Assembly (NCBI GenBank): GCA_040285825.1
Contig: JAUPSS010000007.1
Location: 830,501-894,500 of the forward strand
Origin: Eukaryota sp. TZLM1-RC
Lineage: Eukaryota > Protista > Metamonada: BaSk clade
Length of the DNA: 64,000 nucleotides
Reading direction: 5' to 3'
Positions within the stretch are counted from its first letter, which is position 1; each line of letters opens with the position of its first letter. The position numbers were made by a program, and so were the translations under genes. Positions 1-34,719 of this stretch are shown here, piece by piece. Under the pieces are notes generated by a model. The model worked only from the letters and a program-made list of their open reading frames with translations, did not search any database and was not told the origin of the DNA.

Positions 1-953
1 AATTTACAGTTTTGCTGTAAAAAGCTTCAACAAAAATTGTCAAAGATTTTTGAAAGCTTGGACTTTGATGTTAGACTTGGCTTGGCCACGAAAACGAATC
101 CCGCTTTTGCAAATCTTTTACAAGATATGTGTGACAGTACTTCCTCTGCCTTAGTAACAACAATTCCACAAGTTTATGGTACTCTCTTATCCGATTCTGC
201 TTGGACTCTGAATATGAGATTTCGTTCCTTTATCTGGCCTGATAATTTACCTCATAATTTAATTTGTAAATGTTCTCGAGAAATTACAACTACTCATTTG
301 TTAAATTGTAAACATTTTATTACTTTTAGAAGCAAGGTTCATGATGCTGTAAGAGACCAGTTATATTGTATGTGTAAATCTCATAAATTTGAATCTTTTT
401 TTGAAACCTCTGTTGTCAAATATGTTTGATGCTGAAGATGATTTTCATAAGAATAATGGAGGTGATGCCATATTACCTGGATCAGATGGAAGTTTCATTT
501 TATTGGATGTAATGCCTGTTGATCCTTGTAATGCCTCAAATGAAAGGCTTGTTAATTCTGAAATTCATAATCCCCTTTCAAATGCTGAAAATTTTAAATT
601 CAAAAAATACAATGAACCTTTGTCCAAATTGGCCAGTCTACAGCATGCAAAATACAATTTGTATCCATTTGTATTTTCCCTTTTTGGTTCACTTGCACCA
701 ACTGCTTTACGTTTTTTGGATGATTTTGAAATGATTGTAAAGAGAAGAACTGGCAGAAATTTCAACAGATTGTTTTGGCAAAATAGAATTGTGTTTTCTA
801 TTTTTAAGGGGATGTTGAAGATGGTTTCTGATGCTTTGCTTTCTCTTGGATCTCACTATGAGAGAGTTGCATCTAGTGTTTTTGTTTTGGGAGAGATGGA
901 TTTTTTAGATGTTGATTTATAGGTTTAGAATAAAATTAAATTTTCAAAAAAAA
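1..953 (+). mobile_element. 3' part of RLE-type (CRE-like) non-LTR retrotransposon, family A, frameshifted
   Basis: ORFs 37..429 and 389..922 match the C-terminus of the intact 1122-aa ORF at 50880..54248 (CKC..HLLNC Zn finger, VHDAVRD, RLE region, ...MDFLDVDL*). Short 3' UTR with AATAAA and an A-tail ending ~953. Confidence 0.92.
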
Positions 954-996
954 ACAACAGATTGGAATTGTAATTTTTGTTTATTTTCCTTTCACT

Positions 997-2062
997 ATGA
1001 AACTTCTTGTCTTACTACTACTGCTCACGGCAGTTTTCGCCCGAAGTGTTCCTTTCATTATCTACCATACCACTGTTGTCCATGGATGGCTCCTTCCTAA
1101 GCGTCACAATTCCACTGAATACGCCTATTTTGGAGATTTACAATCCATGATTGAGCACACTAATAGCACCCCCACCCCCACTACCCTCAACCCCAACCCC
1201 ACTACCCTCAACCCCAACCCCACTACCCCCAACCCCAACCCCACTACCCCCAACCCCAACCCCACTACCCCCAACCCCAACCCCACTACCCTCACTTATT
1301 ATTATTATTACTCCTCACTTACTGGTCATTTGTCCCAAACTCTTGTTGGTATTAACAATGCAGATGTTACCTTTATTAATGTTGATGTAGTGCATTCACA
1401 AGCTTCTAGACATGTTGAATTAACCAATTGTGACTTCACTGCAACTGATGTCCAATTAAACAATCTTGAAGTTAAAGTTTTTGATATAAAGAGTGGTTCT
1501 GTTTTTGAAGGTTTGTGTGTACAACTTTTAAATATTGATACTCCATCTGAAGCTCCTTTGAATACTTCCTTCAGTAAAGTAACTTTGGTTGATTCTAAAA
1601 TACTTGATTCATCTGTTTTTAGATTAATAGATTTCAATTCTAGTGCAGAAACTACTTTAACTAATTTGGTTCTCATCAATTTTTCTTCTTATTCAGGTTC
1701 ATTCATCAATGCTGATGACTCAACCTTGGATTTCACGTATGTCAAAACTTTGGTCCAGTTGATTCTGATGGAAAAGTCATTGGTGGATGTGCTAATGATG
1801 AACCACTTATTACTCTTGTTAAATCTAATGTTGATTTTGATGATGTAGTTGTTGTTGGTTTTCAATCTCAATCTATTGTTACTACTGATTCTACTATTGA
1901 TTTAGAAACTGTTCTTGTTCGTCATTCTACTGCTAACGATGGTCACTTTGAATTAACTAATTCTGACCTCAAACTAACTAATGTTGAATTTAAGAATCTT
2001 GAAGGCAAAGTTTTTGGCGTAAAAAGTGATTTTAAAGTCGAGGGTTCAAATGTTTATTATTG
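997..2062 (+). pseudogene. Chimeric secreted-protein (pseudo)gene: signal peptide, metallophosphoesterase-like N-terminus, Pro/Thr/Asn repeat, then beta-helix-like surface-protein repeats; frameshift near 1740
   Basis: MKLLVLLLLLTAVFA signal peptide. HTTVVHGW..H....AYFGD resembles the first motif (HTTDxHGW) of calcineurin-like phosphoesterases. Internal repeat NNLEVKVFDIKSG / KNLEGKVFGVKSD continues in another frame after ~1740. Confidence 0.5.
1167..1295 (+). repeat. C-rich 21-bp minisatellite (ACCCYCAACCCCAACCCCACT)n, about 5-6 copies
   Basis: Directly visible tandem repeat encoding T(L/P)NPNPT. Confidence 0.95.
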
Positions 2063-2079
2063 TGTGGGAAATTTGGGGT

Positions 2080-2125
2080 GTCTGATTATGGTTATTAGTA
2101 GGGGTACTAATAACCATAATCAGAC
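2080..2125. repeat. Perfect 21-bp inverted repeat with 4-nt GGGG loop (hairpin/cruciform)
   Basis: GTCTGATTATGGTTATTAGTA (2080-2100), GGGG, TACTAATAACCATAATCAGAC (2105-2125). Flanking TTTGGG/CCCAAA extends the stem imperfectly. Confidence 0.95.
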
Positions 2126-2504
2126 CCAAACACCAAAATATCAAGTCTCTTTGCAATATCGAGAGCAATTCTCTTTATTCAGAGTCATTGTTTATAGATA
2201 CATAAACGACTGCCTAATCATTAATCATTCAGTTTTTGACTGTTTGTTGTTGATTACGGTGAAGAAAGATTTGTTTATATGTATCTGTATAGTCTATTTG
2301 TTATCCATTCTTTATTATTTATGCTGCTTTGTATTTTTCAATTATTATTCTGATGAAGTAGTTGTTGTTGATTGCCAGTCTCAATTTTTTGTTGCTACTA
2401 ATTTCACTATTCATTTTAAAACTGTTGTTTCTAGCAATAATGATCAAATGATAGTTACTGATGCTTCCACTATTGGTTCTTCCACTATTTGCGAATTATC
2501 TTCA

Positions 2505-2558
2505 GACTGGGTTCCTGACCTCACAACGCATGGTGACGTAGAAGCAAATCCAGGTCCC
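2505..2558 (+). other. 2A-like ribosomal skipping (StopGo) peptide 1: DWVPDLTTHGDVEANPG|P
   Basis: Exact match to the D(V/I)ExNPGP consensus, preceded by G and a typical DLT upstream context. Confidence 0.9.
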
Positions 2559-3248
2559 TCGATCGATCTTTTCTCCATTAAATCATTAGAACCAATGGAA
2601 TTTGTTGTAGATGAGGTAATAAATTATTTTTCAGCCAAGTGGATGATCCAATCCAATCATGTTTCAATTTTGAATGTGAATGTGGTTCAGAGTGCTCTCC
2701 TTGATGACCATGAGTCAATGGTTCGGACCATGCGTAATTACATTATAACACCCATCCTTAACAATCACAATTGTCACTTTGTCATTATTCCAATCAATGA
2801 TGTCTTTGGTAAGACTGTCTCATCAATGGACATAAAATCTGGAGGAATGGGAAATCATTGGATTGTTTTAGTTATTGATGTCATGGGTTTTTTGAAAAAA
2901 TAGAACAACGAAGACTATAATTTATATTGTGGTGCCATAGATTCCATGGTTACTCAAGGTCAAGAAGTATCTCACAATATTGCAGCTGTATTGCACAAAT
3001 TTGCAGTGATTTTAAGTTGCCTTGATGGTATTAAAATTTTTCCTGTGCCTAGAGTTCAAAGTGTGAATGATTGTGGAATTTTTTGTTTGAAATATGTACA
3101 GTACTTTATAGAAAATCATCACAACTTTGTTTCTTTAAACGAGATGTTGACGGAAACAGCCAATATTTCAGTCAATGTATATCAGTTCCGCGCAGCATTG
3201 AAACAACAGTTGCTCACAGAACATGGTGATGTAGAGGCGAACCCTGGT
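2556..3248 (+). other. Ulp1/SENP8(NEDP1)-like C48 cysteine protease domain between the two 2A sites (231 codons, one premature TAG at 2901)
   Basis: His-Asp-Cys order with oxyanion Gln: FVIIPINDV...GGMGNHWIVLVIDV...GAIDSM...RVQSVNDCGIFCLKY. Confidence 0.8.
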
Positions 3249-3251
3249 CCA
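3198..3251 (+). other. 2A-like ribosomal skipping peptide 2: LKQQLLTEHGDVEANPG|P
   Basis: Exact D(V/I)ExNPGP consensus, immediately followed by NLS-like PYCQPKKRK. Confidence 0.9.
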
Positions 3252-3789
3252 TATTGTCAGCCCAAAAAGAGAAAGTCATCAGTGGAATCAACCCCTCCTT
3301 CAAAAACTGTCAGACGATCATCATCGTCTGTTGTTCCCACAAAGGTTGTTTCTTCTGTAAAAATTATGAGACCAATCACTTCTGCCGTGATTTCTTCCAA
3401 TCAGCAAGACAGCCTGCAACAAGAACCTTCAACACTATCCCAAATTGGAAAAGATTCATCCTTGACCCCAATACAACGTAGGACCCAATATAACAAAATT
3501 AGAAAATCATTGGGTTATTCAAAATCATTAAGAAACAGTCAAAGATTTCCGATTCCGGCCGAACATTCATCAAAGAGGAGTCGACGTAGGTTTGTCCAAA
3601 GTAGAGGTAGTACTGAACTGCCTCAGGAACCCAGAGATTTTCAAAATCTTGTTGCACCTAAATCTTCTGTTTCAAGTGTTAATGAATTTAAAAAAATTGA
3701 TGTGATTCGAGGAAAGAAGAAAAAGGTTAAAAAGAAACCTTTTATTGATGATCCTGTCCTTAATCAAAAAGTTAGTACCTCTGATCGCC

Positions 3790-4590
3790 CTCTTATTTGT
3801 TCAATTGATATTGAAACCAAGGAAATTGGTGTTGAAATAACCAAGAAACAAGATATCAATAAAACTTTAGACAATTTGCGAGCTCAACAAAAGCAATCAC
3901 AGTCAGAGCGACGTCGCCAAGTGACTGATGATGAGCAATTGTTAGAACAACAGGTTTTTTTAGAACGGCAGGAAATTTCAATGATTTCTATGATTTTGTT
4001 TGAAATTGACCATAATGGGGATACTATTTTCCATTCCTCGAGTATAAATTATGTTGCTAATTTAGAGGGAACGAGACGAGTGTTATCATGGACCAATGAT
4101 AACAAACCAGTTTTTGATGTTTCATTGAATAAATTTGATCATGAACAACATCTATTGAAGTCATTTGCAGAATTCACTTATGATAAAAAAATTGTTGGTT
4201 TCTTAGGCCATAATATTTTTAATTTTGATTTACCTGTGTTGGCTGTGCGATTATCACATTTTGGAATAACTTTTCCAATTTTGTCCCAAAGAATTGGTCT
4301 AAATGAATTATATCTTCATCGACGTTGGAGAGAAGTAATTCAGTTTTATGAGAATTTCACTATTTTGGACACTTTTTTGTTTGCCAGAAAATTCATTAAA
4401 ATTAGATATGGAGCTTCATTGAACAATTTAGCATACCATTTACTTGCTGAAACAAAACTTAAACTTCATGATGAGTTTAAAAATTTATTACCTATTGATA
4501 GCCTCTATTCAAATAAGGCATTGAGAACATTAGGATCTTATTGTCTTCAGGATGCAATTCTTGTTTTCAAATTATTCATTCTATTCCAAA
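3790..4590 (+). other. DEDDy 3'-5' exonuclease domain (family B DNA polymerase proofreading type)
   Basis: ExoI SIDIET (3801-3818), ExoII GFLGHNIFNFDLPVL, ASLNNLAYHLL.ETK, ExoIII YCLQDA (4539-4556). All four acidic residues and the Tyr are present. Confidence 0.85.
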
Positions 4591-6203
4591 GGGATAAAAT
4601 AATAAATCAGTCATGGTCTACAGTAAAGACCTCTGTTTCATCTACAGCAAGGTATGGAGAATTACAAGAAGAGTTACTTATAGCATCTGAGGTAATGACT
4701 GCTGTGAGACAACAAACTTCATTTTGTGTCAAACAGTATCTTTTAGTCAAATTCATGAAGAACGAAGATATGACAAATTTTGACTACAAACTATTCTATC
4801 ACACAATGATATGTTTGAAAAAATTATCTTCAAAGGTGCATCGGTTTAAATTAGCATTCGATAAACCAATACCAACGTTAAGTGATGATTTGAACAACTT
4901 TATTTTTGGGTTAGGAACTTATGATAACAACTCTGAATTCCCTGGGTATCGCCATTGTGTTACTGAATACACCGACACTTCATCAATTTGCCATATGCCT
5001 AGACTAGATTATAACCATGTAAATAGATCATTTGAATATGAAATGTGGCCTGCTTTTGAACTGAATATCAAAAGAAATTATCATTTATATATCAAAAGGT
5101 TCATTAATCATATAATGGGAAAAAAAGATTTGGAAGATCTAATGAAGGAAAATTGGACAGAAGTTCTTCCAGATAGTTTGCAACATTTGAATTATATGCA
5201 ACGCCAAAGATTTCTCAGTTTCTTTAGATTTCGTTTGAAAATTGTGAAGGATTTTATGACTGGTGGGGAGTGAAATGAATTAATTAATTACTTGCAAAAT
5301 TTTGGAAATTCTGATCACCCATCTAATGTATATTTTTTACAAGAAGTTATTAAATATTTTGATGATTCTACAACCGATGTTGTGTTTGAAACCACAAATT
5401 ATTTGATTGAAGAAGGTGTTACATTATTATTGGAGCACTGGTTGTCTATAATTTTCCCAAATATTATCCAAATTAATGAGGGCAATGGAACAGAAAATGT
5501 GTAAGTTAAAATACTGCAATACACACTTGAAAAGTATCCTTTACATTTTCTGAAACCATCATTTCAAATAATTCAATATTTAGAAGGAATTGAAGCAAAA
5601 TTGTTTAATGTCATTCCACTTAATATGGGTAGTAAACCTGGATACTTTCCAATAGACACGCGAACATTGTGGGGTATTGGGAAAAATGCTATGGGTAATT
5701 TAGATGGTAAACCTCGATTTAAACAAGTCCAAAATTATATGTGTTTGTCTGATATTGGTAGTCTAACTCACAATCAACAGAATTCTTATTGGAACAGATG
5801 GTTCAACACTAATAACAAATCTTTCAAAAAAAATGGTTTCAAATTCAATAATTACGCAGTAACCAATGGTATTAGTATTTGTTTTCAGTTTGTGAGAAAA
5901 GATCTCGCAGGATTAACCTTTAAACCTGATTCAAATATTGCCAAGGTATCAGTCTCTTATTTTGATCACCTTGATCCTGAAGATTATAGTGATAAAAATG
6001 TGGTTTTTGGTGATCTTGGAAAGAGAGATTTAATTCAATTTGGAGCACAGTCGGAAGAATCCAATTCAAATCCACTGAAAAAATATGAATGGATGAGGCT
6101 AACATATGGTGAATGGTCACGTCTCAATAGAAAACACAAACAAGTGTTACAATTTTGTGTTAGACAAAATAATGGTAATATTGAAGACCAGACAATGACC
6201 ATT

Positions 6204-6284
6204 TGTTGGCGCCCTAAGGCTTTTATAATATGAATAGAAAATAAATTATCTTTATCTCAACCACTTTTGCAACCTAAGGCAACA
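6204..6284 (+). repeat. 5' LTR (81 bp)
   Basis: Identical to 13147-13227; TG...CA termini. Confidence 0.97.
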
Positions 6285-6367
6285 ATAATTATTGGCCATA
6301 TTAGGTTATAGGTATACCGTTCACACAACTCACAGCTATCAAACAGAGGATATCTTCAGCGGATATC

Positions 6368-9300
6368 ATGTCAGTCTCTCCTCGCCAGGACACTGACTCC
6401 AGCCAAATTTTTTACATTAGACAGATGCAACAGTACGACAGAGATGCTTTGAGCATAGATACAACAACAGCAGGGACTGAAGAGTCAAATAAAGAAGAGG
6501 ACTTTGGCTCGAGACCACCCTCCGCCCCTCCTCATGAGAAAGATATGGAACCAGGCACGGAACCACCTCCCGCCTCTTCCATGTCCAACAAACCAGATAA
6601 GGTTTCAGGAACGGGACCACCCCCCTCCTCACCTAAAGAAAATGTTGGGTTAAGCTCGGATACTTCGTCTGCCCTAAAGGACTACGAAGAACTCCAGTCC
6701 GTTTTAGAAGAAATGGACGACGATGAAAAAGAGCTTCGCCAACAGATAATGAAGGACGCGGAAGCTCACCTTGAACCAACAGATTATTGTTTGTTCGAGC
6801 AGCTCCCTCCCCTTTGGAAGCAAATATCAAAATCTGGTAGAAATGTGGGATTCCAGACTCTGGGCCATAAAGGGGACCCTAATAGAGTCTACGAATTCCC
6901 TCAAAATGAGAGAAGAGAACTCATTAACGCGTTGGACACTTTGAGTAGAGAGACCTATGGACGTGGGGCAGAACGCCGTCCTAGGATAACCGGTATGGAT
7001 AGAGAGATCCATGTGATTCTGGCAAAGCCTATCAAAGATAGGCCTGATTGGGAAGCCATTCACTTAGATCAGTTCGGGAGAAGGATCAGGTTCTTAGCCA
7101 TCGAACGAAGGAGCAGAACCGATACCGATGACATCCTGCAAACTAAATTACCGGCATGGGTGGACTCGCACTTTGATACGATCATCCATAACTACTCAGA
7201 GGTAGAGGATGGGGCTCCTACTTGTTTCAGAGAATACATGGAACAAGCAGACAGCACAAATCCAAGCAAGTTGGATCCCGTCAGTGACTTCTTTGACGCG
7301 GACGCCCTAAATAATATACTTACGGAACGCTCGAGCGTATCCACATTTAGGAGCCGCCCAAATAACTTCATTCAGCAATTCGGGGAATCAACGACAAGGA
7401 AGAAGAAGTTCAGGTTCTTGGTCACGGGTGATCAATCAACAGAGCTCCACCAGAGACCTAAACTTCCTATAATTGCCCCAATTATATCTGAACAAGAGCA
7501 ACCGGTACAAGTCTGTTCCATTGACGTACTCCCTGATCACATCCCAACAGTAGATGTGACAGAACGAGCAAACAGACCTACCAGAGTGGTTCAGGGACCA
7601 TCAAGTCCCTCCCAACCCATGCTCACTAGCGCATCAGAAGACGAAGTCGAGTTGAGAGGACCTAGTTTAGATGAAACACCTCCTCCTCAACCCCCTCGTA
7701 GAAGAGTTACTTCTGAGGAGCCTCTCCGTTTGGAAGACCTCCAAGCTTCTAGAAATATTTTGGATATGAGTATAGCAAGTAGTCTTCAGAGACATGTGGA
7801 CTCTCAGCCTAGGTCAGCTGAATATAAAGCCCCTCACCTATCTGAGAAGGACCCTCTCAACAAGATGTCTCTCGTCTCCTTCCTCCTCAAATTCCAAACA
7901 TGGGACAAATACGGGCGCAAGATAGCCAATCGAAGCTTTCAAGCCCCTGGTCAATCTGATTGGTCTCGTGCTATGTTGATAGCAACCCAAATATTTGGCG
8001 AAGGAAAGACCCAGATTACCCCTGAGTTGTTATCATCACTCCCATCTCACATCAGAGAAGAAATAGACAGGGACATGAAACAGCCACTCTTAAGGATCGA
8101 CCCAGAACTAACAAAACGTTTGGGACCTCCTATCCATCATTATGACTTATTTAGAAGTATGATGATTAGTACTTGTCCATCCGGCTAATCAAGCATGGTC
8201 GACCCCCATCTCATTTCTAGATGGCAAGGCCAAGGACTTCTAAGACCGGACTTCTCAGACGCCGACCTAATGGTTTTTCTGCTACGCAGGACACAATTTA
8301 CCTCATATCATGAGGCTTGCTCTGCCCTAGCAAAACCATGTATAAACTGGAGAAACATCCACAACAAAGTGGATGCGGACAACGAATTTGGTAGGTTCGT
8401 CGAAGATTTTGGAGACGTCCTGAGGATGACCACTTACATGGTTGACCACTCCATATCTGCATCAATTAGGGGAAGCAGTGGTTTAATAACCCTCTCACCC
8501 GCCCTTATTGCAGAATACTTTCTCTTGGGCATAGATAATTTTGCCATTACCAAGGAGCTGGCAAGCCATTGGACAAGAGAAGATCTATGGGACCCTTCAA
8601 CAGGTACAACTTTGTTAGACCTGATTTCGACCACCAGGAGACACTTTCTAGCTTGGTGCCAAACAACAGGAAATAGGCACACCATGGAACTTTTGAGAAA
8701 ACAAGCTGAAAGAGAAGAAGACATCCTAGTAGGCCTTTCGACCATGAGAACGTTCTCTAGAGGAGCAACCCCATCTGGTCCAGGTACTAAACGTCGCTCG
8801 GGAGGCGGATTCAAAGGAACTCCCCAAAACATATATGTCCCAGAAAGACATGAACGAGAGGGATCTAAGTTCTGTACATTCTGTAACGTCACCGAAGGAA
8901 ATAACCCTATCGGTCACACGGTTTTCGAATGCAAAGACCCTCGTTGTACCAGGAGCAAGGTACCAAAAGAATTGAGGTTTAAGATCGGCGAGGCTGATCA
9001 GCCTGCGAGAAGTGGCAGTGTAGTTAGAGGCCGAGGTGGCCGTGGTAGACGTGTTTCTAGGTTTAGAGGTAGGGGCCGAGGTGGCCATTTTAGAGGACAT
9101 AAAGGTAGAGGTCAATATAGACCTATTTATTACATAAATACACAAGAGGATACATCATCAATACCATCCCCTTCTGAGAACGTGTCAGCTAGTTCGAGCA
9201 TGACCTCTCACAGACGGATTGACCGTTTCAGCAACAGGGTCAGAAATACAGGAAACTTTCCCAATCGGAAACAAATCAACGCAATCAATCATAATCAATC

Positions 9301-9904
9301 AATTGCCGATTTCGGAAACCCAGTTAACAACTCCCCAACAGCTCAACAATTCTTACTAAATCCTCTACAATTCCACAAACCCAGCTCTGATATCAATAGT
9401 ATTTTTGGTATAAATTCTACGGTTAGTGAGAACCACATCAGATCCCAGCGTTCTCCATTTCTAAGATTGGAGATTTTAATAAATAATGTAAAAATGATTG
9501 CAACTATTGATTCGGCAGCGTTTTGTTCGGTTATAACAGAAGATTTGGCTAACAAATGCAACATGTCAATTAATAGAGATGATACAATTGAGTTCTTACC
9601 AGCCAATAACGTATCAAGTAAATCGCTAGGGAGTACAAATGGTATTCTGTCGTTCAACGTAGGAAGCATTGCGCACCAGGTACATTATAGACATACTCTT
9701 CCCATAATCCCGGGTTCGAACAAATTATTAATAGGGATAGACATGTTAAAAACACTTGGGCTTCAGACGGATGATGGTCTTTTCATTAGATTAGACAAAG
9801 AACACCGCACTTTGTTAAATGCGGAATCTGAATTCGACTCAAGAATCGCTCAACATTCGATTGGGACCTTAGATAACCAATTGACCGAGTCCTTCCGATT
9901 TTGA
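6368..9904 (+). CDS. Gag-like protein + aspartic protease (in-frame TAA at 8186-8188)
   Basis: ORFs 6368..8188 and 8195..9904 are in the same frame. Atypical Zn knuckle CTFC-x10-H-x4-C, RGG-rich tract, protease motif ATIDSAA...LLIGIDML. Confidence 0.8.
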
Positions 9905-12900
9905 GGAGCAGTTAACTAGATCTGGTTGTGAGATAAAATTAGATAATGATAATAATCAAATAAAATTAACGAGTCTACTAGGAATTTTCAGCGATGTTTT
10001 TAGTGAAACTCCAAACAGAAAAGGAATCGATTGTAAACCTCTAACAATCCCCTTTAGAGACGAGAACGCTATAGTACATAAACCTGCTAGACGATTAAAT
10101 CCCAGCAAAATGGAAATAGCAAACAAAATATTTGATGAACTGATTGAAATGGGCTATGCAGTTGAATCTAATTATAAATTCAGCTCTCCTATTGTCTTAG
10201 TTATATATCCTGACGGCAAGAAACCCAGGCTAACTGGAGACTTTAGTGGTAAAGATGGAGTCAATGCCCACACGATTTCAGTAGAGCCTAATCTACCTAG
10301 GATTAGTGATATTTTAGAGTTTTTAAGTAGAGCAGATTACATAGCCACGCTTGATTTACCAAAAGCTTTCTGGCAAATGAATGTAGCTGAGAAGGACATT
10401 GAGAAAACATCAATCTCAATCCCTGGAAGGTCAATTATGTTTAAAAGAGCTTGCTTCGGATTAAAGAACATCCCAGCAGTATTTCAAAATGTAATGATGG
10501 AAATATTCCAAATTGATGGCGTTTTTCATATATATTGATGATATTATAATAGTTGGAACGACTTTCGATGAATTCTATAAGAGATTACAAAGAGTCCTCC
10601 AATGCGCCAGAAATAGACGTGTAAATATAGGTTTACGTAAATGTAAATTCGTAACATCCAAACACCCTATTGATATTTTAGGAAGCACCTTCCAGGATAA
10701 AACCAGATTTATTAGTAAGAAAAAAATCGAAGCCTTGATGAGAATCCCTAGACCAAAATCAGTGAAAGAAGTTCGCTCATTGGTAGGATCCATCAATTAT
10801 ATAAGAGATTGGCTTCCAGGTATTTCCGAGTTAATAGCTCCAATCAATGAGTTAATTAAAGGAATACCTAGAGTAATAAAATGGACCAACGAGCATGACG
10901 ATTATCTTAAACAAATAAAAGATTTAATAATTAATCACATGCCCCTTGAATTACCAGCTCCGGGCAAGCGCGTACTAATAAGTACCGACGCATCAGATGT
11001 AGCAGTTGGAGGCGTTATTTGGCAAGAAATTGAACCATACTCCCCTGCAGGAACCCCGCTGAATAAAAGAAAAGTGAAACCGTTGTCGTTTTATAGTAGA
11101 TTACTTACAGAAACACAACGAAAATGGTCCACTTTACAGAAAGAATTATACGCAATACTTCTGATTTTAACTGAAAGTTGTTTAGAAAGCTACCTTTTGA
11201 CTAGACATCTAACAATTTTCACTGATCACAAAAACATTGCATTCCTGGCCACAGCTCCAGAGAAAAATAGAATTGTAAAGAGATGGCTGCCGATACTATC
11301 TGAATTCGACTTTGATATAGTCCATGAACCAGGTGAAGATAACCACTGGGCAGATATGCTATCGAGGAATATTGATTTAGATCAAAATGAGGAAACTGCT
11401 TCTATATGTAGTATAAATATACCAGATACTTTACTTTCGAATTACGAGATACCTCCAATAGACGATGATTCTGATTCGGACTTCGAAGATATCCCATCAA
11501 TTTCATCCCTAAGTAGACACCAGGACTTACCTATTTTTTCTTCCTGGTTCTCTAAAATAAGATCTGAACAACAAATAGCCAAGAATAATAATGACCCTCT
11601 ATTTGAGAATGCAATTCTAGATGAAAATACTCAAATTTGGAAAAACAATAAAAATAAAATTTTAATTCCAAAATGCCTCAGAAAACAGGCACTATTATTA
11701 ATTCATGGATTGGTTCAATCAGGCCACCCCAGCAAAAACGACAGTCTACATAAACTGTCCAAAAGCGATTTTTTCTGGCCTAATATGAGAAAGGACCTCA
11801 TAAACCACATCAAAAGATGCCCAACTTGTCAAAAAACGGCTCCAGTTAATAGAATAAAAACACCTTCTACAGGTTCCCTTTGGGCAGATCGTCCTTTTGC
11901 TAGATTAAATGTCGACACAATTGGACCTCTGAATACTGATAGTGATGGTAATAAATACTTATTAGTATTTGTAGATTCTTTTACTGGGTATTCAATTTTA
12001 GTCCCTTCTGAAGGAACTCAATGCCTTAGAGACCGCAGACGCTTTGATTTGGAACGTTTGCGCAATTTTTGGCATACCTATGTTAATTCATAGTGATAAT
12101 GGTCCTGAGTTCGCCAATGAGACTTTTAAGATAGTGTGTAACAGATTAGCTATTGAGATGAGTAACTCAATACCCCACTACTCTGAAAGTAATGGACTCG
12201 TAGAACGAAAACATGGAGACGTTCTACAATGCTTGAGAAAATTATTAATAGATTTTAATGATTACGGAAATTGGTCTACTTATGTACCCATATCCCAACT
12301 ATTAATAAATTCCACTAAAAGCAGAAAGACAGGTTTTACACCTTACGAACTAATGTTTGGATCTTCGATTAGTCCAAGATCGGACCCTGCAAACATATTA
12401 GGAAACTTATCAAAATTTGATTCCAATATACCTTTATTAGACGATATTAAAATGAAAAATACTCGTCTGCAAGAAAAAAGGGAAGAAGCAGAGCGTCATC
12501 AATTATCAAATACTCCGATTTCTGTAGACAATACTAATTCGCGCTCTATAGTATTTAATACTGGTGACTATGTCCTACGTAAAACCAAACAGAATAATAA
12601 ATTACATGGATCTTGGAACGGACCCTTTTTAGTAATAGACCGTCCTTCCAACTCTACTTTATTATTAAAGAATCTTATCACTGGCAGTGAATTAAAAGCT
12701 GCTAAGAAAGATTGCAAAATCTATAACGCAGATAATCCTCAGGATATCGAATTTCTAAAAGCAGTCGCAGCAGGCGATGCTGAGAAACATGTTATAGAGA
12801 AAATCCTCTCAGAATATAATTCTGACTCAGGTAGTTTCTGTACTGTTCAATGGTTTGGCGGTGAGACAACAGAAGAGCCTCTCCATTCAGTTAAACATTC

Positions 12901-13030
12901 AGAAGCTTACAAGTTGTTCAGTAGGAATAACAAGAAAATTGGAAAACGTACCTCTAGTCAACGTAAGAGTACCTCCAATAGCTCTACGCCTTGCAAGAGG
13001 CCTAGACGTAGTACTAGAATTAGGAAGTGA
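9897..13030 (+). CDS. Pol: reverse transcriptase, RNase H, integrase, chromodomain (frameshifts near 9900, 10525, 12005)
   Basis: SSPIVLV, LDLPKAFWQ, FGLKN.P, YIDDIII; RNase H TDASD..KELYA..TDHKN; integrase H..GH...CPTC, VDTIGP, HSDNGPEF, ESNGLVER; GPF motif; chromo-like VIEKIL...VQWFGGETTEEP. Confidence 0.93.
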
Positions 13031-13128
13031 TGCTAATTCTCAGTTTAGATTAGGTTATTTGTAGTTATTTAGTTATTTAGTTATTTGTTTATAGTTTAGA
13101 TTCATATTTATATAAGCCTATTAGCTCT

Positions 13129-13146
13129 GAAAAAGGGAAGAAGCAG
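13129..13146 (+). promoter_or_regulatory. Polypurine tract (plus-strand primer) of the LTR element
   Basis: GAAAAAGGGAAGAAGCAG directly abuts the 3' LTR. Confidence 0.85.
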
Positions 13147-13227
13147 TGTTGGCGCCCTAAGGCTTTTATAATATGAATAGAAAATAAATTATCTTTATCT
13201 CAACCACTTTTGCAACCTAAGGCAACA
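13147..13227 (+). repeat. 3' LTR (81 bp)
   Basis: Identical to 6204-6284, followed by TSD CATT. Confidence 0.97.
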
Positions 13228-13231
13228 CATT

Positions 13232-13870
13232 GAGGAATGGAATTCGTGGTTACGTGATCATGATTCAAAAACTGTTGATTACCACAAATTCAGAGAGTTT
13301 ATGTTGGCCAAGTGTAAACACTACAATGCAGTGAAACAATTTTATAGTTTACCCTTATGGAGGATACATAATATCCAAAGTTATATCCATAGGCAAAAAA
13401 CTGAAGAAAGAATTGTGAACAAGTTATTGACAACATTCGGTGGTAAAGACAAAATAGTATTGTGTATTGAGGACTTGGGTCGTAAACCAATCAGTAATCC
13501 AACTCCTTCCAATAGATGGATAAGTTGTTGTATTAAACCAGGTTTTTAAACTGTTCTAATTGATGAAAGCCATACTTCTTCAAAGTGTCCTTCTTGCTTT
13601 GAAAAAGTGTTTGAAACAACTATCAAAACAAGGAATCCAATTCCTAAAAGTGCTGAAAAAATACCGTTCAAATCTCCTCATGGCCTTTTGGAATGTAGAA
13701 GTTCTCAGTGTATTAATGATGCAAAAGCACGATGTAAAAAGTCAGAAAGTAGAGAAGCAGTCAAGGCAAAGTATTGGAATAGGAACAAGATGGCTTGTTT
13801 GAATATGTTGAATGTATTTGATCACTGGTTATCCGGTGAAGAAGGTAGGCCTGTTTATCTTAGAACTTAG
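13232..13870 (+). pseudogene. 3' part of Fanzor (Fanzor1-like): helical region, RuvC-II, Zn finger, RuvC-III, C-terminal RP motif
   Basis: In frame with the 5601 ORF after LTR removal (..QTMTI|EEWNSWLRDHDSKTVDYHKFREFM..). FY..PLWR..IQSYIHRQKTE...FGGKDKIVLCIEDLG; LIDESHTSSKCPSC; HGLLECRSSQC; WNRNKMACLNM; GRPVYLRT*. One premature TAA at 13547. Confidence 0.9.
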
Positions 13871-13960
13871 TTATTTTTACTGACTAGTAAAATCTAGTCA
13901 TAGTTGGCATACGCCACCTTATCCCTGATCTCTGCGAACCAATGATCACTTTTATACACC
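13840..13960 (+). ncRNA. Candidate Fanzor omegaRNA scaffold
   Basis: Overlaps and follows the Fanzor stop codon, where omegaRNAs are expected. Stems: TGACTAG/CTAGTCA (13881-13900), TGGC/GCCA (13905-13916), TGATC/GATCA (13926-13948). Boundaries are inferred. Confidence 0.5.
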
Positions 13961-14529: not shown

Positions 14530-14704
14530 GGATTAAGCATGTAATAAATTATTTTATTATTAAATGGAATATAGTTTAGAAGAAGAAAAAGTATCCAAGA
14601 TATTTAATTCTTTTATAGAAAAAGAGTATTGTTTAGAAAAAAAATCATCTTATGTAATTAAATCTTCTACAGAAAAATTTATACCTTTTTGGATGATTCG
14701 ATTA

Positions 14705-17600
14705 TTTTTTTAAACAACTGGAATTTTTATTGAGATAAAAATAACCATCTAGAATTCAATATCCTCCAAACAAGCGTCACTGTTACTGAACCTACTCACA
14801 GCATTACGTTCATATTCTACACCAATAGCTAAAAGTGCCTTTGAAATCATTGTTGGAATAGACTTGAAAATGCAGAAAACAATTCTATTTAACCAGAAAG
14901 AGGAGTTCATTGTTTTACCAGACCTATTCAGTAACACTTTTTTAAAATTTTCCAAAAAGTGCAACCCTGAAGGTCCAATATTGCCAAAAAGAGAAATGGC
15001 AAACGGCACAAACTGATATTTCACATGTTCCACTCTACCTAACTGTGCCAAAGGTTCTTCATATTTTTTATCTTCTTTTTTTCGGCGTTAGATAACGGCG
15101 AATCAGCGGAATACACTAAACGAGCGGCAGAATTTTTGCAAACATCAACTGAGACAACATCCTCAACATTAAGAACACCATCGATCCCTGGAGCTACTAA
15201 ATCTGCCCTTCTTTTACCAAAGGAATCATCAGTTTGATCTGAAGACAGCTTACGTACTAGTGGCTCAATAAATGCCTCTATATTGAAACTTTTGCACATG
15301 GCATATAATTGATCACGAACTGAGTCATGAACAATTGAGCGATAAGTTATAAAATACTTACAGTTTAAAATATGGGAAAGCGTAACAACACTCTTGCAGC
15401 GACAAATTAAATCATTTGGTAATGAACAAGGCCATAGAAAACATCTCATTCTCATTGCAGTGGTCCATTGGTGATCATTAAGTAGAAGGCCATAAATGTT
15501 GGGAATTTGGGAAATTAGGCAACTTGAGCAACTGTCTTCAAGATCAATCAAAAAGTTTGCAAAAACGGGATTTTTTTCCTTAGCCAAGCTAAGACGTACA
15601 ATATAATCCAAGTTTTCTAAAACTTTCAAGATTTTTTTCTGCAATTTTGCAAAAGTCAGTGGTAAGGAGAGCAAGCTTCTTGAAGGAAGTTCCACAATAT
15701 CAGAGGGGAAACATTTAGCCCAAATATTGGGTGAAAGAGTTTCAATTTCCTGTTGCAAAGAAATAAGATAAGAGCTGCCACAATTTTCAATGAGATGAAT
15801 TTTTTCAGGAAAACGATTCACAAGTTCATAAATAAAATTCTTTCCACCTCCAATAAAGGCAGCTTTACAAAGGTAGCTTGATTTATGAAAATCAACACCA
15901 CCAAAATTTGTACCACAAAAAATGTGGCTTCGTAACTGAGATGCATCAATTTCCAATAATTTTGCTAAAACATTGGTTCTTTGTTCATTAAAAATTCGAC
16001 AAAACTCCAAAGAAATTGATGGTGATGTTGATCTCAAAATATGAGTAAATTTTCCAGAATAACAGATTTTTAGGAAAAAGAATTTCAAATGTTTCTCAAT
16101 ATTTAAATTTTCTATTGATTCTAATTCATTTCCAAATTGAGTCAACAGAGTCGAAAGTTGGCCTTTCACTTCATCAATATTTTCGAGATAACAACCCAAA
16201 AAACGAAACCCAGACTGATCATAATTGATAAAGGGGACATTGACATCATTAATGAAAAAATCAATTGGTTCATGGCCAATAATCAAACATTTGGAGATAT
16301 TCAATGAGAGACCAATATCTTCATAACGCTGTTAAATAAAAGTTGCTATTTGTTTCAGAATTGTAATAGGAGCAATTACAGAAATGTCATCCATATATGC
16401 TACAATATCTATTTCTGGGAATTTTTCTTTCAATTCGCACATTAATGGATGAATTGCCAGACAAAAGAAAAAAGGACCAAGTGGATCACCTTGTTTAACA
16501 CCTGAAGACGAAAGCAGGTCAAAGTTTTCATAGACCAATGTGGATGATTTTCCATAAAATGAATAGAAAAAAGGATCAACTTCAGGAAAATGCTTTCGCA
16601 GCAAAGGTAAAATGGAAGAACGAGATACAGAATTAAAAGCATTCTTAAAATCTAAATTGAAGATGTAATTAGAATCACTAGAATTAAAAAACACATCCGA
16701 CGAAAGAGCAGCAGAAGAAGCACCATCAATTGTCTTGATTCCAAATTGAAATGGACTGAAAAATTCCTTGGCTTTTTTCCCAATTCTATTGAAAACAAGA
16801 GACGCAAGAATTCTTGAAAACGATTCTCCAATTGCAATTGGACGGATTTTGGATTGACTTTTTTTGAGAGCAATTAAGCGAGCACTGGTCATCTCAAAAG
16901 GGACTTTAATTTTTAACGTAAGAAGATTGTTGAAAAAAAGAACAAGATCATCAGCAATTTCAGGACACTGTCCAACAGCTGATTTGATCATGTCAAAATT
17001 CAACAAAGATGGCCCAGGAGCTTTTCCAGTAGGCATTTGCTGAATCAGTTTCAATACCTCTGAAGCATTGACAGGATTTTGCAGCCAATAATCAACTGAA
17101 TCTGGTTTAGTACAATGAAAATTTTCTTCTGGATGAAGATGATTCAATTGGAACAATGTGCTTTCATTACATTCAGCTAAATCAGAAGAGAATAGACCTT
17201 GTTTTGCAGATCCAAAGCGTCCTTTTAAAGCTAATTTTCTCACTAATTTTTCTTTCGAAAAAACATTTTTTTTAAAATTTGTTTTTTTCGATAAAAGTTT
17301 TTTATCTTTTTTCAGAAAAAATTTCCAAATAGGCGTAACATCCCATAATTCTTTACGGAGATTTTCAGTAAATCGATTATTACAATAAATATCAACTCTA
17401 TGTTTCACTATTGTTTTTAATAAATAATTGTTATATTTTATATCATAATTCCCACAGTAACATACAAGCGATGTTTTTTCGAGTGTCATGATTACAAAAG
17501 GGAAATTGTTAGTCTGAACCAAATCTAAAATTGGAAATGGCCACAATTCGTTTGGAATGGTTTCGGTAAAGGTGGATGCAGCCCTAATCCAATGAAGTAT
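14705..17600 (-). mobile_element. RLE-type (CRE-like) non-LTR retrotransposon, family C, near full length, degenerate
   Basis: RT motifs GKAPGPS, RPIAIGE, LDFKNAFN, GVKQGDPLGP, YMDD; CRC..HILNC; HDSVRD; RRADL. In-frame stop at 16332 and frameshift near 15060. 5' end uncertain. Confidence 0.9.
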
Positions 17601-26665: not shown

Positions 26666-28120
26666 GGACTCGAGAGAAGAGATGAAATGACCAAAATTTT
26701 GTAATGATATCAATCCTTCCCTTTTTCTCTTCAAATGACCTTGAAACTGGCAATTTCACTTTCTTATTGTCACCAACCAGGTTGGGACAGTCACGTCATC
26801 TTCATTCTGTCTTTCTGAATACATTGATGTATTTTACATAATAGTCCTCTATTTTGCTGATTCATGTGGTGTGGTCTGCCAGACGACTTGAAACGATTGC
26901 CATTACTCTCTAACACCCATGACATAAGTGAATGTTTATTTTTATTTTCCTTATCACATCAATCATTACGAAAATTTCCTTTTGGTTGTGACTGAGTTAA
27001 GATCTTATCTAATTCTCATCGCGAACAATACTGATGACTCAAGAAGAAAGACAGTCTTGATTTGTGAGTTAATAACAACGATGGAATAATATTCAGATAT
27101 AAGACATGCGTTAAAAAGTACAAAAAATCGGTCTAGAATTGTTAATGTCAAATTTAGATTTTTTGGTTGAATCATTTCCTTTTGAAGTTTCAGCAAGAGC
27201 AGTAGTTCCTAATAGCTGCATTTCATTGATGAAAAGATAACTCATTCCAAAGTCTAAAATGAAAACCATTTGTAAAGACTTAGCATTTCAAGCTCTCAGT
27301 TGATTGTACCGCATCTTTTCAGCAAAAGAATCTCGTGTGTGGTTTTCTGATGCAGCAGAATGACACAAACACACCATGGGCGTGGGTGCTGGCTCAGTAA
27401 TTCACGTTGATTGCTTGCATATTATAGGTATGTTGATAAAAAATTGCACTTTTTATTAATAAAATGTTCTTTATATACTTTCCATTGGGCACAAATATTC
27501 AAAAAAAACCCTGCTGTTTTTAAACTAAAATCTCAATAATGGATAACAGATCTTCAGTTTTTCACACCGTATGGCTGCACTGATGAACAAACGAATGGAA
27601 GTTAATGATGCCAGTGCTTGAAAATCTCAATTCTATATCTGGCTATCAAGACCAAATGAAGATAGGCAGAGCCAGAAAAAAGTTGGTAAAAGAAGCTTTC
27701 TTACAGAAGAAAATGGATTTGTCAACGAAATTTTGTGCAGTGAATCCAAAAGTTTTTGCCTAGCTAATATTATCCATATATAAAAATCTAAAATCATATA
27801 TAAATAATTATTGACCACTCTGAATCAGTTGCTGGCTAAATTCAGCTGTGAATCGCCTACTGTGCGGTGTCTGTTGGATTTGTAATAAATAAATGCTATC
27901 ATTGGGTTATGCCGTGTTGAAAATATAATTCTGAAATTAGCTGTTGTCTTGCCAGCTCATTAACGAAGGTGTGATAGATACAATCTTGTGATAGATCTTT
28001 ACTTTTGTTTTGTTTGCACTTTGACAGTTTTACTTCGAATTGTTATTCGATAACGCTTACTGAGAAAATTGGCATTGGGTTATTCGATGGCCACAAATAC
28101 ATAGGTTAATTAAAATGTCT

Positions 28121-28192
28121 TCGGTTATAGTATAGTGGTGAGTATCCCCGCCTGTCACGCGGGAGGTCGGGGTTCGATTCCCCGTAACCGAG
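28121..28192 (+). tRNA. tRNA-Asp (GTC)
   Basis: Acceptor TCGGTTA/TAACCGA; anticodon arm CCCGC-CTGTCAC-GCGGG; T arm CGGGG-TTCGATT-CCCCG; downstream T-run. Confidence 0.95.
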
Positions 28193-28467
28193 AATATTTT
28201 TTGATTGTGCAGAAGCAGCAAGTTGAAAGGAGATGGGATAGTCAGTGATGGATTCAATTTTTATATTCTTTAGTTGCTCATTGGTTACAAAATGTGTTTT
28301 GCGATGGAAGCATTTTAACAAGTATTTCTGTATTTTCCAGAAATGATAACTGTGTGACGTGATGCGGAACATGATGTGGAACAACTTAGACGACTACCCT
28401 GTTTTCTGTTGACAGATGTTAATATGTTTGGGCATCTTTGTCTTTTTGTGTATTATTAATCATTTGA

Positions 28468-32840: not shown

Positions 32841-33204
32841 CCCCAATAGGTCACCAACAGCAATATAATAATATATTGCAATTATTATGTTTTTGAAAAC
32901 GCAATATTTTGCAATAAATCAAATTGGTATCTGGTCATTACACATCGTCATGCCAAAGAGTTGCCAAAATTCACAAAATTGCTTCAAATTTTGCGACATC
33001 AAAGCAGAACTATGATACAAGGGAAATGAATTTCCAAATTTTGTTTAGTTGATAGAAAAGCCTGTTTTTTGAACTCATAGACAAAATAATCTGCAATAAC
33101 AATAATCTATTTTCTTAAAATTGAGCTTCGCAATAAAAAAAAGTAATAAAAACAATTCCAGTCACTGTTGATTGCCCTCGAATAATTGCCACTACATCAT
33201 CCTC

Positions 33205-34719
33205 ATGACATTATTCATTTCTCAAGAGAGTTTTCATGACGCTGCTCACCGTTCTGTTCCACCCTTAGCAACCGAAGAAGCAGAAGTTTTAGACAACTCC
33301 CTCTTTGGTGACAACCACATTATCACTGGCATTGAAAGTGAGGATACTCTCACAGATGAGCAGTTCTCAGCTGACGAACGTCCCCGCTCCATAATTAAAG
33401 CTCTCCTGAAACAAGTCCGTCCTGGTGCTGACCTCTCTCGCATTACTCTTCCCACATTCATCCTTGAACCCCGTTCCTTGCTGGAGAAGCTCACAGACTG
33501 CCATGCTCATCCATACCTCCTTTCAAAGGTCCGCCACATCAACCACCCGCTAGACCGAATCATTTCTGTAGCCCGTTGGTACTCTTCCGGCTTCCACACT
33601 AGACCTCGTGGTGTTAAGAAGCCGTACAATCCTCTTCTAGGTGAAGTTTTCCAAGCTGAATGGGACGTCCAAGGGTCAAAGGTCCAGTACACTGCTGAAC
33701 AAGTGTCCCACCATCCTCCGGTCTCTGCCTTTTACCTCTCCTCTCCCAAGGATGGCTACTCAGTCGAGGGTTCCATCAAGTTCAAGTCTCAGTTCTTGGG
33801 TAATGCTGCTGCTGCTTTAATGCTTGGTCATGCTGACGTGTCACTTTTAGGAGATTTTGGAGGAAAGTCAAGCGAGGTCTATAGAATCACGTTTCCAAAA
33901 TATGTTTCTAGAGGGGTTTTAGTAGGTACTCTGTTTATGGAGCTCAATGGGAATTGTTCAGTAGAGGGGCTTGATAATAATTTAGTTGTCAATTTTGAAT
34001 TTAAAAAGAAGGGCATTTTTGGAGGTCAATCTAAACTTGGCCTTGTCGAAGGGTCAATAATGATTCGTCCTCCTCTTGATTCTACAGGAAAAGCCCAAAA
34101 AGATATTGAAATCGCAAGAATTCATGGTAATTGGATGTCTGAACTGAACATTGAATGGTTAGTTCAAAATCCCCACAAGTTATATGACGAAGTTGTTAAT
34201 TTCAATAGAGATAATTCAGCAGAATATTCGGCTTTTTTAAAACACATTAGAAAATCTATTTTAAAAACTCCTGTTTGCCAAGAACCTCTATTTAATGTTT
34301 CTGCTTTCCCGCCATTGAAAAAGTCTGTCAAGGATGTGAATGATCAAGGTCAATGGGAATCTCGAAGACTTTGGAAGAATTTGACAAAATCATTAAAGGA
34401 GAATGATTTTGATTCAGCCACCATGCACAAGTCTGCTCTAGAAAATGAACAACGTTCCCGTCGTTCTCAACATTATGAACGTCTTGATGCAGAAGGTATC
34501 TCTCACGAAGAGAGCAACTGGCATACACCTTGCCTTTTTGAAAAAACCACTGTATCAGCTGATGGTGTTGAGGTATGGGTTCCTAAGAAGAATGTTCTGG
34601 AAACTGGAGATGTTGGCGGCGAGGAGGTTGAAGGGAGTTTGGAAGAGTTTTCTGGCTTTGAGTTTGTTGATAAGGAATGGGTTGAGAAGTGGAGGGAATG
34701 TAGGCAAATGTTGGGTTAG
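33205..34719 (+). CDS. Oxysterol-binding protein (OSBP/Osh family)
   Basis: DLSRITLPTFILEPRSLLE, KKPYNPLLGEVF, signature EQVSHHPP, ESRRLW. First ATG at 33205. Confidence 0.95.
   Translation: MTLFISQESFHDAAHRSVPPLATEEAEVLDNSLFGDNHIITGIESEDTLTDEQFSADERPRSIIKALLKQVRPGADLSRITLPTFILEPRSLLEKLTDCHAHPYLLSKVRHINHPLDRIISVARWYSSGFHTRPRGVKKPYNPLLGEVFQAEWDVQGSKVQYTAEQVSHHPPVSAFYLSSPKDGYSVEGSIKFKSQFLGNAAAALMLGHADVSLLGDFGGKSSEVYRITFPKYVSRGVLVGTLFMELNGNCSVEGLDNNLVVNFEFKKKGIFGGQSKLGLVEGSIMIRPPLDSTGKAQKDIEIARIHGNWMSELNIEWLVQNPHKLYDEVVNFNRDNSAEYSAFLKHIRKSILKTPVCQEPLFNVSAFPPLKKSVKDVNDQGQWESRRLWKNLTKSLKENDFDSATMHKSALENEQRSRRSQHYERLDAEGISHEESNWHTPCLFEKTTVSADGVEVWVPKKNVLETGDVGGEEVEGSLEEFSGFEFVDKEWVEKWRECRQMLG

Follow-up and report, generated by a model that had tools for sequence, protein, structure and literature searches.

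A decayed Skoliomonas litria element, probably mobile, that joins a polymerase B-type exonuclease to a Fanzor1 nuclease in a predicted 2A polyprotein

To our knowledge, no RNA-guided DNA nucleases other than Fanzors are known from eukaryotes. Fanzors are under engineering as compact genome editors, and the joining of a nuclease to an exonuclease has been done by hand by engineers. Here, we analyzed 64,000 nucleotides of strain TZLM1-RC (GenBank assembly GCA_040285825.1, contig JAUPSS010000007.1, positions 830,501 to 894,500, forward strand), hereafter the window, which is AT-rich (about 35% GC) and dense in retroelements. The strain is Skoliomonas litria, an anaerobic free-living metamonad of a soda lake (PMC11603281, PMC11316075). 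Positions 984-13916 of the window (+ strand) are probably a dead copy of an element that is mobile, multi-copy and restricted to Skoliomonas (BaSk metamonads), encoding a predicted 2A polyprotein with a fused exonuclease and Fanzor. The unit, about 5.9 kb long, is split by a 7.0-kb long terminal repeat (LTR) retrotransposon.

The closest described proteins are the Fanzor1 nucleases SpuFz1, PpFz1 and GtFz1. The Skoliomonas protein shares with them a homologous REC/WED/RuvC/zinc-finger core and an N-terminal region with nuclear localization signals (NLS). As in these proteins, the canonical RuvC-II Glu is replaced by Gly and an alternative Glu is located in (D/N)ExxTSS; the D-E-N triad is that of GtFz1. 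In contrast to the known Fanzor1 proteins, a family-B DNA polymerase (PolB)-type exonuclease of about 300 aa precedes the Fanzor part, and the whole forms the last part of a predicted 2A polyprotein. The lack of terminal inverted repeats (TIRs) and of a linked transposase is common to this element and the GtFz1, NlovFz2 and MmeFz2 loci (PMC10432273). TnpB-only IS200/IS605-like elements and the non-autonomous Helitron2 elements with Fanzor1 are similar in having a single nuclease gene, no TIRs or target-site duplications (TSDs), 3' hairpins and a variable 5' sequence (PMC3627910). Unlike in those elements, no Rep/HUH or TnpA partner was found here, and the termini do not resemble the TC..CTRR ends of Helitrons.

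Ulp1/C48 protease domains are carried by transposons, for example the plant Mutator-like KI-MULEs. The Skoliomonas element likewise has a SUMO/NEDD8-protease-like domain on a mobile element; however, the protease is predicted to be a separate 2A-delimited product beside an RNA-guided nuclease, and it is optional among subfamilies. The 2A (StopGo) peptides of RNA viruses and the N-terminal 2A peptides of non-LTR retrotransposons (L1Tc, Ingi, animal APE-type; PMC3708506) also place D(V/I)ExNPGP at protein borders, and in the retrotransposons a leader, a 2A and an enzyme likewise stand in this order at the start of a mobile-element open reading frame (ORF). Here, in contrast, the carrier is a Fanzor element without a reverse transcriptase, with two 2A sites and a large membrane-type upstream product. 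Engineered Cas9/Cas12-exonuclease fusions, such as TREX2-SpCas9 (PMC13370227), covalently join an RNA-guided nuclease to a 3'-5' exonuclease; the Skoliomonas fusion differs from that construct in being natural and in having an exonuclease of the PolB proofreading type.

The Fanzor1 N-terminal part, with the REC/WED region and RuvC-I, is found at 4806..6203 (+) with stops at 5271 and 5502. The C-terminal part, at 13232..13870 (+) with a stop at 13547, contains CIEDLG, LIDESHTSS, a CxxC..CxxxxC zinc finger, WNRN and RPVYL. The six stop-delimited pieces of the window were searched separately, and intact paralogs and orthologs stood in for the joined protein (L numbers denote loci, P numbers annotated genes or proteins). 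P0004, which is 97% identical to the C-terminal 650 aa of the window copy (from about 4806), matched the SpuFz1 chain (8GKH) with E 2.5e-14 (phmmer) and PpFz1 with 6e-10. A family profile of 29 sequences (A8) matched PpFz1 with E 6.5e-47, SpuFz1 with 1.8e-44 at nearly full length, and GtFz1 with 2e-13; profile positions 612-1044 align to residues 625-1023 of the SpuFz1 chain. The AlphaFold model of the post-2A protein had a mean predicted local distance difference test score (pLDDT) of 54.7, being good in the exonuclease and REC-like parts and poor in RuvC. All seven best Foldseek matches of this model in the PDB were Fanzor structures (SpuFz, PpFz, GtFz; E about 1e-12), followed by PolB exonuclease domains. 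Homology to the Fanzor1/TnpB superfamily is therefore evident in both sequence and fold, and the Fanzor assignment of the initial annotation, for which a Foldseek comparison had been suggested, is borne out.

The exonuclease is a family-B-polymerase-type DEDD 3'-5' exonuclease domain at 3791..4700 (+), with Exo I as SIDIET (3804), Exo II as GHNIFNFDL (4206) and Exo III as YCLQDA (4539). It is preceded by a basic low-complexity linker at 3249..3790 (+), the translation of which contains the NLS-like runs PKKRKSS, KRSRRR and GKKKKVKKKP; the linker is disordered in the AlphaFold2 model (pLDDT about 20). Among the six pieces of the window, Pfam recognized only the exonuclease, the protease and Fanzor fragments being too short or divergent. 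PF03104 (DNA_pol_B_exo1) was matched in the 789-aa middle piece with E 2.7e-7 and 30.7 bits, against a cut-off of 23, and in relatives with E 1e-12 to 1e-13 and 45-50 bits. The family profile matched the Pol delta exonuclease with E 4.7e-12. Together with the Foldseek result, the score above the gathering threshold and the Pol delta match confirm the PolB-type exonuclease proposed earlier. The Exo I-III motifs (DxE, NxxxFD, YxxxD) are intact in most subfamilies; in P0037, Exo II reads DLD, not FD.

Upstream of the linker is an Ulp1/SENP8-like cysteine protease module of 231 codons at 2556..3248 (+), broken by a TAG at 2901-2903. Its GMGNHW and QSVNDCG motifs provide the catalytic His and Cys, and the GxHW and Q/SxNxxDCG (QxNxxDCG) protease motifs are present. 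Both halves in the window are colinear with the intact protease of P0012 from strain TZLM3-RCL (E 3e-4 and 3e-5), and P0012 matches human SENP8 with E 2.8e-5. A small protease profile (A9) covered the whole SENP8 domain (chain residues 17-190) with E 7e-7, followed by SENP1, SENP2, SENP7 and Ulp1. Profile and motifs thus agree that the module is homologous to the Ulp1/SENP fold and has the catalytic His and Cys; the initial annotation had claimed such a protease.

These modules are parts of one reading frame. The restored frame consists of 2448-6203 (1252 codons) and 13232-13870 (213 codons including the terminal stop), with 1464 sense-frame codons and internal stops at 2901 (TAG), 5271 (TGA), 5502 (TAA) and 13547 (TAA). 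Translation agrees with the proposal that deletion of 6204-13231 gives one frame without a frameshift, reading ..EDQTMTI/EEWNSW.. across the junction, and it likewise confirms 1464 codons from ATG 2448 with four internal stops. The junction EDQTMTIEEWNSW is read exactly at three LTR-free paralogous loci (L001, L002, L008), and in L001 the ORF crosses it as ..NGNIEDQTMTIEEWNSWLRDHDSKTVDYHKF... The BLAST segments of these three loci to the two parts of the window overlap by exactly the 4-nt CATT. The same order and frame recur in the paralogs and in two other strains.

The insertion at 6204..13227 (+) is a nested Ty3/gypsy-type LTR retrotransposon with all features of its class: identical direct LTRs of the TG..CA type (6204-6284 and 13147-13227, 81 nt each), a CATT TSD (6200-6203 and 13228-13231), a polypurine tract (13129-13146) and the order protease, reverse transcriptase, RNase H and integrase. 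The LTRs, the duplication and the three empty-site paralogs bear out its role as the splitter of the frame. The insertion is recent, because the two LTRs are 100% identical. The LTRs of this element are unusually short and, despite their identity, pol is broken up into ORFs that overlap (10110-10538/10513-12093 and 12044-13030). A relative that is 93% identical is located in L003 at 3291-9863.

The window copy is a pseudogene, with four nonsense changes, one frameshift and the LTR insertion. All four stops are single-base changes from sense codons retained in paralogs, and the leader frame is broken by a 1-nt deletion near 1752. The paralogs L001, L002 and L008 are likewise broken or truncated. 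L001 has an insertion of its own of about 760 bp (L001:11432-12195), just upstream of the protease catalytic-Cys motif; the minus strand of this insertion holds a 227-aa ORF with similarity to C-terminal ORFs from a family of retroelements also seen at window 14702-17546 and L001:8327-9248.

Intact relatives are found in TZLM3-RCL, where the element forms a young family of 17 proteins at no less than 90% identity, with many intact single-exon ORFs of 1168-1376 aa; L009, for example, has an intact ORF of 1238 aa. The unit there consists of 66-nt tandem repeats, an 85-aa leader starting with MKLSPLIPC, ..NCWIPDLTVCGDVHSNPG/P (the slash marks the predicted skip), the exonuclease and Fanzor. The search for intact copies with the same domain order thus succeeded for leader-2A-exonuclease-Fanzor, but these copies lack the protease. 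Among other TZLM3-RCL subfamilies, P0012 has 2A-protease-exonuclease without a second 2A, P0037 has 2A-exonuclease-Fanzor, and P0010 has no 2A. Because the subfamilies vary in protease and 2A, the exonuclease-Fanzor fusion is the constant core; it usually follows a 2A, and the protease and second 2A are optional.

Several further features were observed upstream of the core in TZLM3-RCL. The 66-nt repeats are present in 4.7 copies at L004:6010-6319, upstream of the leader ATG, and gene models translate them; the N-termini of P0012 and P0037, from two subfamilies, have a common repeated block, TFSHEGD..SVPEVAVSVSE. These upstream and N-terminal repeats may serve as promoters or terminal repeats and not be coding. 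A multi-copy gene for a PIF1-like helicase is arranged head-to-head with the leader-2A-exonuclease-Fanzor ORF (L011:1-1900 and L012:916-1710, both minus strand). Its cluster comprises 11 proteins with at least 90% identity on 7 contigs, about 662 aa at full length and without a Rep/HUH domain. The helicase lies within a repeat common to L011 and L012, is absent from L004, L009, L010 and all S. litria loci, and may mark a longer parent element.

The initial annotation began the ORF at ATG 2448; the true start is ATG 997. The leader ORF, 997..2555 (+), has a signal-peptide-like N-terminus, repeats, a hydrophobic segment and a tail ending in NPG, and falls within the annotated gene P0072 (locus tag P9112_010750, 997-2903). 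In L001 and L008, a continuous ORF covers the leader and the first 2A and extends into the protease. A 21-nt tandem repeat at 1170-1291 codes for TPNPNPT, and the ORF also has repeated units that read as beta-helix-like. A strongly hydrophobic stretch is seen in the hydropathy profile about 90 aa upstream of NPGP. From these features, the leader, at about 500 aa, is predicted to be of membrane type, carrying a transmembrane segment in addition to its signal peptide and repeats. The earlier product sizes of 36, 231 and 1197 aa are arithmetically right from ATG 2448, but the first product would be the leader of about 500 aa, not a 36-aa peptide.

Two exact DVEANPGP motifs, at 2535-2558 and 3228-3251, are located in frame at the domain borders, as had been noted; the 64 kb contain no other match, and shuffled sequences gave an expectation of 0. 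The first, DVEANPG/P at 2535..2558 (+), has the upstream context SSDWVPDLTTHG; a W-x-P-D-L-T..GD(V/I)xxNPGP context recurs in L003, L004, L006, P0037 and P0012. The second, LLTEHGDVEANPG/P at 3228..3251 (+), has Leu-Leu at the canonical positions 6-7. The two coding sequences differ by five synonymous and no non-synonymous changes. The C-terminal signature D(V/I)ExNPG/P thus occurs twice within the ORF and is kept in paralogs, with E14H in TZLM3-RCL, where all variants carry His at position 14 (DVHSNPGP). Of the substitutions at D12, E14 or N16 in a deep mutational scan of P2A, E14H alone retained activity (bioRxiv 10.64898/2026.09.24.754024). A 2A is also located upstream of the exonuclease-Fanzor part in four further subfamilies. 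In L003, a diverged S. litria subfamily, the 2A is a hybrid, being like the first upstream (CWIPDLT) and like the second downstream (YCQPKKR). L003:11430-11595 is 97.6% identical to window 3213-3378, the region of the second 2A, with less than 80% identity in the adjoining sequence. This looks like recombination between two 2A repeats, by which the protease module may have been removed, or once added.

The element is multi-copy and mobile, since its proteins form clusters on several contigs, the flanks of the copies differ and the 3' end is precise. The P0004 cluster holds 11 proteins of S. litria on 5 contigs; the P0001 cluster of TZLM3-RCL holds 17, and strain GEM-RC1 has 18. In a search of 1.84 billion representative proteins, the family was confined to these three Skoliomonas strains, and the next-best matches were ordinary PolB enzymes; scans of metagenome and viral contigs with the C-terminal alignment found no relatives. 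L008, on a different contig from the window and with unrelated flanks, is homologous to window 984-2016 (88%), 2180-6203 (97%) and 13228-13916 (96%), so that the homology begins 13 nt upstream of ATG 997. For L001 and L002, it begins at 1652 and 4478; L002 is located on the window's own contig, JAUPSS010000007.1 (3.2 Mb). The last base is identical in all four S. litria copies (window, L001, L002, L008), 46 nt past the stop codon, and the shared end reads ..GTTGGCAT(A/G)(C/T)GCCA, after which the flanks differ immediately. The 5' extent varies while the 3' end is constant (window 984-13916; L001:9301-9831 and L001:10020-16058; L002:9673-12110; L004 and L009-L012), a pattern that recalls 5'-truncated retrocopies or one-ended rolling-circle elements. 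One copy consists of the last 530 bp only.

Two terminal hairpins are located at 13881-13900 and 13905-13916 (+), the second ending at the last base of the element (fold z-score -3.2). The TZLM3-RCL subfamily, which is unrelated in sequence, also has two terminal hairpins in the same arrangement; in both families the second closes within 1-2 bases of the boundary, and hairpins downstream of the gene are found in other subfamilies too. The window pair may mark the 3' terminus of an omega-RNA scaffold, or else a structure of the transposon end. An Rfam search of the window returned two tRNAs only. No TIRs, TSDs or conserved flanking motif were found at five 5' and seven 3' junctions, and no transposase in or beside any copy, as is the case for several characterized Fanzor loci (PMC10432273). 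The 3'-terminal sequence was not found at the ends of resident retroelements, as a test of trans-mobilization by long interspersed elements (LINEs). The features of a Helitron or HUH element are also lacking: there is no Rep domain, the PIF1-like helicase of TZLM3-RCL is without HUH, and the termini are unlike those of Helitrons. The mover of the element would act in trans or be of another kind.

The catalytic site requires separate consideration. The RuvC-I Asp lies in FGDLGKRD (6012-6014), the alternative Glu in LIDESHTSS (13565-13567) and the RuvC-III motif at 13775-13786. In alignment with SpuFz1, this Glu corresponds to E541 and the second Asn of WNRN (13784-13786) to D606. The canonical RuvC-II site is IGD or LGD in relatives, with Gly aligned to that of MGDWS in SpuFz1, and the alternative Glu of (D/N)ExxTSS lies about 37 aa past it, which is the rearranged RuvC-II of Fanzors; Gly occupies the canonical position in all of them (PMC10530073). 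The D, alternative E and N positions are conserved in nine copies from three strains, and the RuvC-III Asn is present in every copy examined (three strains, at least five subfamilies). Three motif readings of the initial annotation need correction: its WNRD reads WNRN in all copies, its D(P)G is DLG in the window and DPG in relatives, and the Glu of CIEDLG is specific to the window copy, relatives having Gly. At window 13470-13490 (CIEDLG), the mutated Glu of this dead copy happens to be the residue of classical TnpB at that place, a coincidence that misled the first reading. Of the motif of Bao and Jurka (2013), D-X(125,275)-[TS][TS]-X-X-C4 zinc finger-X(5,50)-RD, the D (6012), TSS and CxxC..CxxxxC are present with a spacing of about 179 aa, and the final RD is RN in all copies. 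Since the active Fanzor1 GtFz1 has the same RN, the motif is too strict, and membership in Fanzor1 does not fail.

The Asn raises the question of whether the Fanzor part is nuclease-dead, an RNA-guided binder that delivers the exonuclease in the manner of TldR, Cas12k or engineered dCas fusions. In nine of nine copies examined, WNRN stands in place of the RD called "strictly conserved" in the Fanzor/TnpB motif (PMC3627910), and an intact second nuclease domain is always fused to the Fanzor part, both as this idea would predict. However, GtFz1 with its natural Asn at RuvC-III cleaves DNA, and activity rises above the wild type in SpuFz1 D606N and drops in GtFz1 N658D (PMC11423790). Conservation also extends to the RuvC-I Asp and the alternative Glu. 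A dead Fanzor, an idea raised from WNRN, is thus very unlikely and was discarded on the GtFz1 Asn and the hyperactive SpuFz1 D606N. The site should be read as a functional D-E-N triad like that of GtFz1, a prediction from the alignment and from these two enzymes. A different objection is that the 2A motifs are relics or non-working, so that the product is one uncleaved fusion or is cut by its own Ulp1-like protease. P0012, which joins protease to exonuclease without a second 2A, the P0010 subfamily without any 2A, and the departure of the first 2A from the canonical Leu6-Leu7 cluster are in line with this. We consider it unlikely, since D-V-E-x-N-P-G-P is exact twice and has been maintained through the five synonymous changes, a 2A is kept at the same border in two species, the only position-14 variant is the tolerated E14H, and the second 2A matches the canonical peptide including Leu6-Leu7.

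That separately encoded genes share a frame by coincidence has a very small probability. The S. litria annotation does split the locus into P0072, P0031, P0073 and P0074, but these splits fall at copy-specific stops and frameshifts. Over 2448-6203, there are 3 stops in the element frame against 92 and 134 in the other two frames, and the intact TZLM3-RCL copies are single ORFs; with the continuous ORFs of L001 and L008 and the domain order of P0012, they decide against the coincidence that the initial annotation had named as a way to refute it. The leader could also be a host surface-protein gene into which the element inserted in frame, with the first 2A freeing the host product, as has been proposed for the N-terminal 2A of some non-LTR retrotransposons. 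Conservation around the 2A sets in only some 10 aa ahead of GD(V/I), the subfamilies have different sequences farther 5', and gene models P0040 and P0055 fuse host genes (e.g., helicases) to the element; the diverged L003 follows an upstream ORF with a common short leader motif, HSVFxCLxLITVK. In contrast, the window copy and L008, which lie on separate contigs and have unrelated flanks, have the complete leader in common up to 13 nt before the ATG, and the 3' flanks diverge immediately past the element. No stand-alone homolog of the leader was found, only element copies being matched, and in TZLM3-RCL the 85-aa leader and the upstream 66-nt repeats are common to copies at different loci. A host-gene origin of the leader therefore has little probability, and insertion into a host surface gene was rejected on the presence of the L008 leader in the repeat unit and the missing stand-alone homolog.

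Several points weigh against the reading of the element as a working 2A polyprotein around a Fanzor. Each of the four S. litria copies examined shows decay, and comparisons among copies of this species gave a dN/dS of about 1-2, so that the family may be extinct in S. litria; this ratio reflects neutral decay after insertion and says nothing on the master copy. The RuvC half of the AlphaFold2 model is of low confidence (pLDDT below 50), and the protease model is unusable (pLDDT 37.5). For the protease, Pfam Peptidase_C48 gave no match at E<0.1, and an Asn aligns to the catalytic Asp119 of SENP8 in both subfamilies. In the first 2A, the leader-type one, position 6 is Asp and not the Leu of canonical peptides, and the efficiency of this 2A is uncertain. 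RNAalifold on five 3' ends, which hold too little variation, gave no covariation support for an RNA structure. Finally, a 3'-5' exonuclease does not make the 3' overhangs of canonical homologous recombination.

We propose the following course of events. The ancestral element would have been essentially one ORF of about 1,950 codons, coding in order for the membrane-type protein of about 500 aa, a 2A, the SENP8/Ulp1-like protease, a second 2A and the NLS linker-PolB exonuclease-Fanzor1 protein, followed by a hairpin-forming 3' end of 46 nt. From the biology of 2A peptides, the ribosome would skip at each NPG/P, and one mRNA would give three proteins. With a transmembrane segment lying ahead of the first 2A, this 2A and all that follows it would remain cytosolic. 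By analogy with other Fanzors, the exonuclease-Fanzor protein would enter the nucleus, bind an omega RNA from the 3' end of the element, and use a D-E-N RuvC site, as in GtFz1, to cleave matching DNA. More speculatively, the exonuclease might trim the cut ends, blocking simple re-ligation, and repair might then copy the element; this role is only a guess, because the 3'-5' polarity gives no 3' overhangs. The protease might strip SUMO or NEDD8 from repair or chromatin factors of the host, or cut the polyprotein where a second 2A is lacking. In its fullest form, which we consider doubtful, the exonuclease-Fanzor, in some TZLM3-RCL copies with the PIF1-like helicase, would be a self-sufficient RNA-guided "cut, resect and copy" machine without a classical transposase, to which the 2A polycistron adds a host-manipulating SENP8-like protease and a membrane protein. 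If true, this would be a new mode of propagation of eukaryotic DNA elements and a natural template for nuclease-exonuclease editors.

The term "exonuclease" is absent from the literature on Fanzor diversity and structure consulted (PMC3627910, PMC10432273, PMC10530073, PMC10711439, PMC11423790, PMC13565253), and "protease" from PMC3627910 and PMC10711439; no pairing of a Fanzor with Ulp1, a SUMO protease or a cysteine protease was found in the literature searched. A Fanzor fused to an exonuclease, a protease partner and the use of 2A are thus undescribed in the Fanzor/OMEGA literature searched, which agrees with the earlier remark that no description of the architecture was known and is not proof of absence. 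The locus appears to be the first case of predicted 2A skipping organizing a multi-protein unit around a Fanzor, and it would widen the range of 2A use, so far RNA viruses, non-LTR retrotransposons and some cellular genes. The whole Skoliomonas clade fuses Fanzor and exonuclease naturally, and intact copies exist (e.g., P0046 in TZLM3-RCL). The family is also a second, independent lineage with the D-E-N RuvC site, the site shown to raise SpuFz1 activity. The combination of a single ORF, no transposase found, a fixed 3' end and variable 5' ends bears on what Fanzor does for its carrier elements.

The surroundings of the element are rich in transposons. Directly 5' of it, window 1-957 belongs to another repeat, with four copies of at least 97% identity, in both orientations, in L002 alone. 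ORFs for non-LTR-looking reverse transcriptases are located at 14702-17546, 50883-54248, 58221-59798 and 60285-61799. Host genes in the window code for an oxysterol-binding protein (33172-34716) and a RING-finger protein (35461-36729), and the two tRNAs are tRNA-Asp (28120-28193) and tRNA-Glu (48915-48986).

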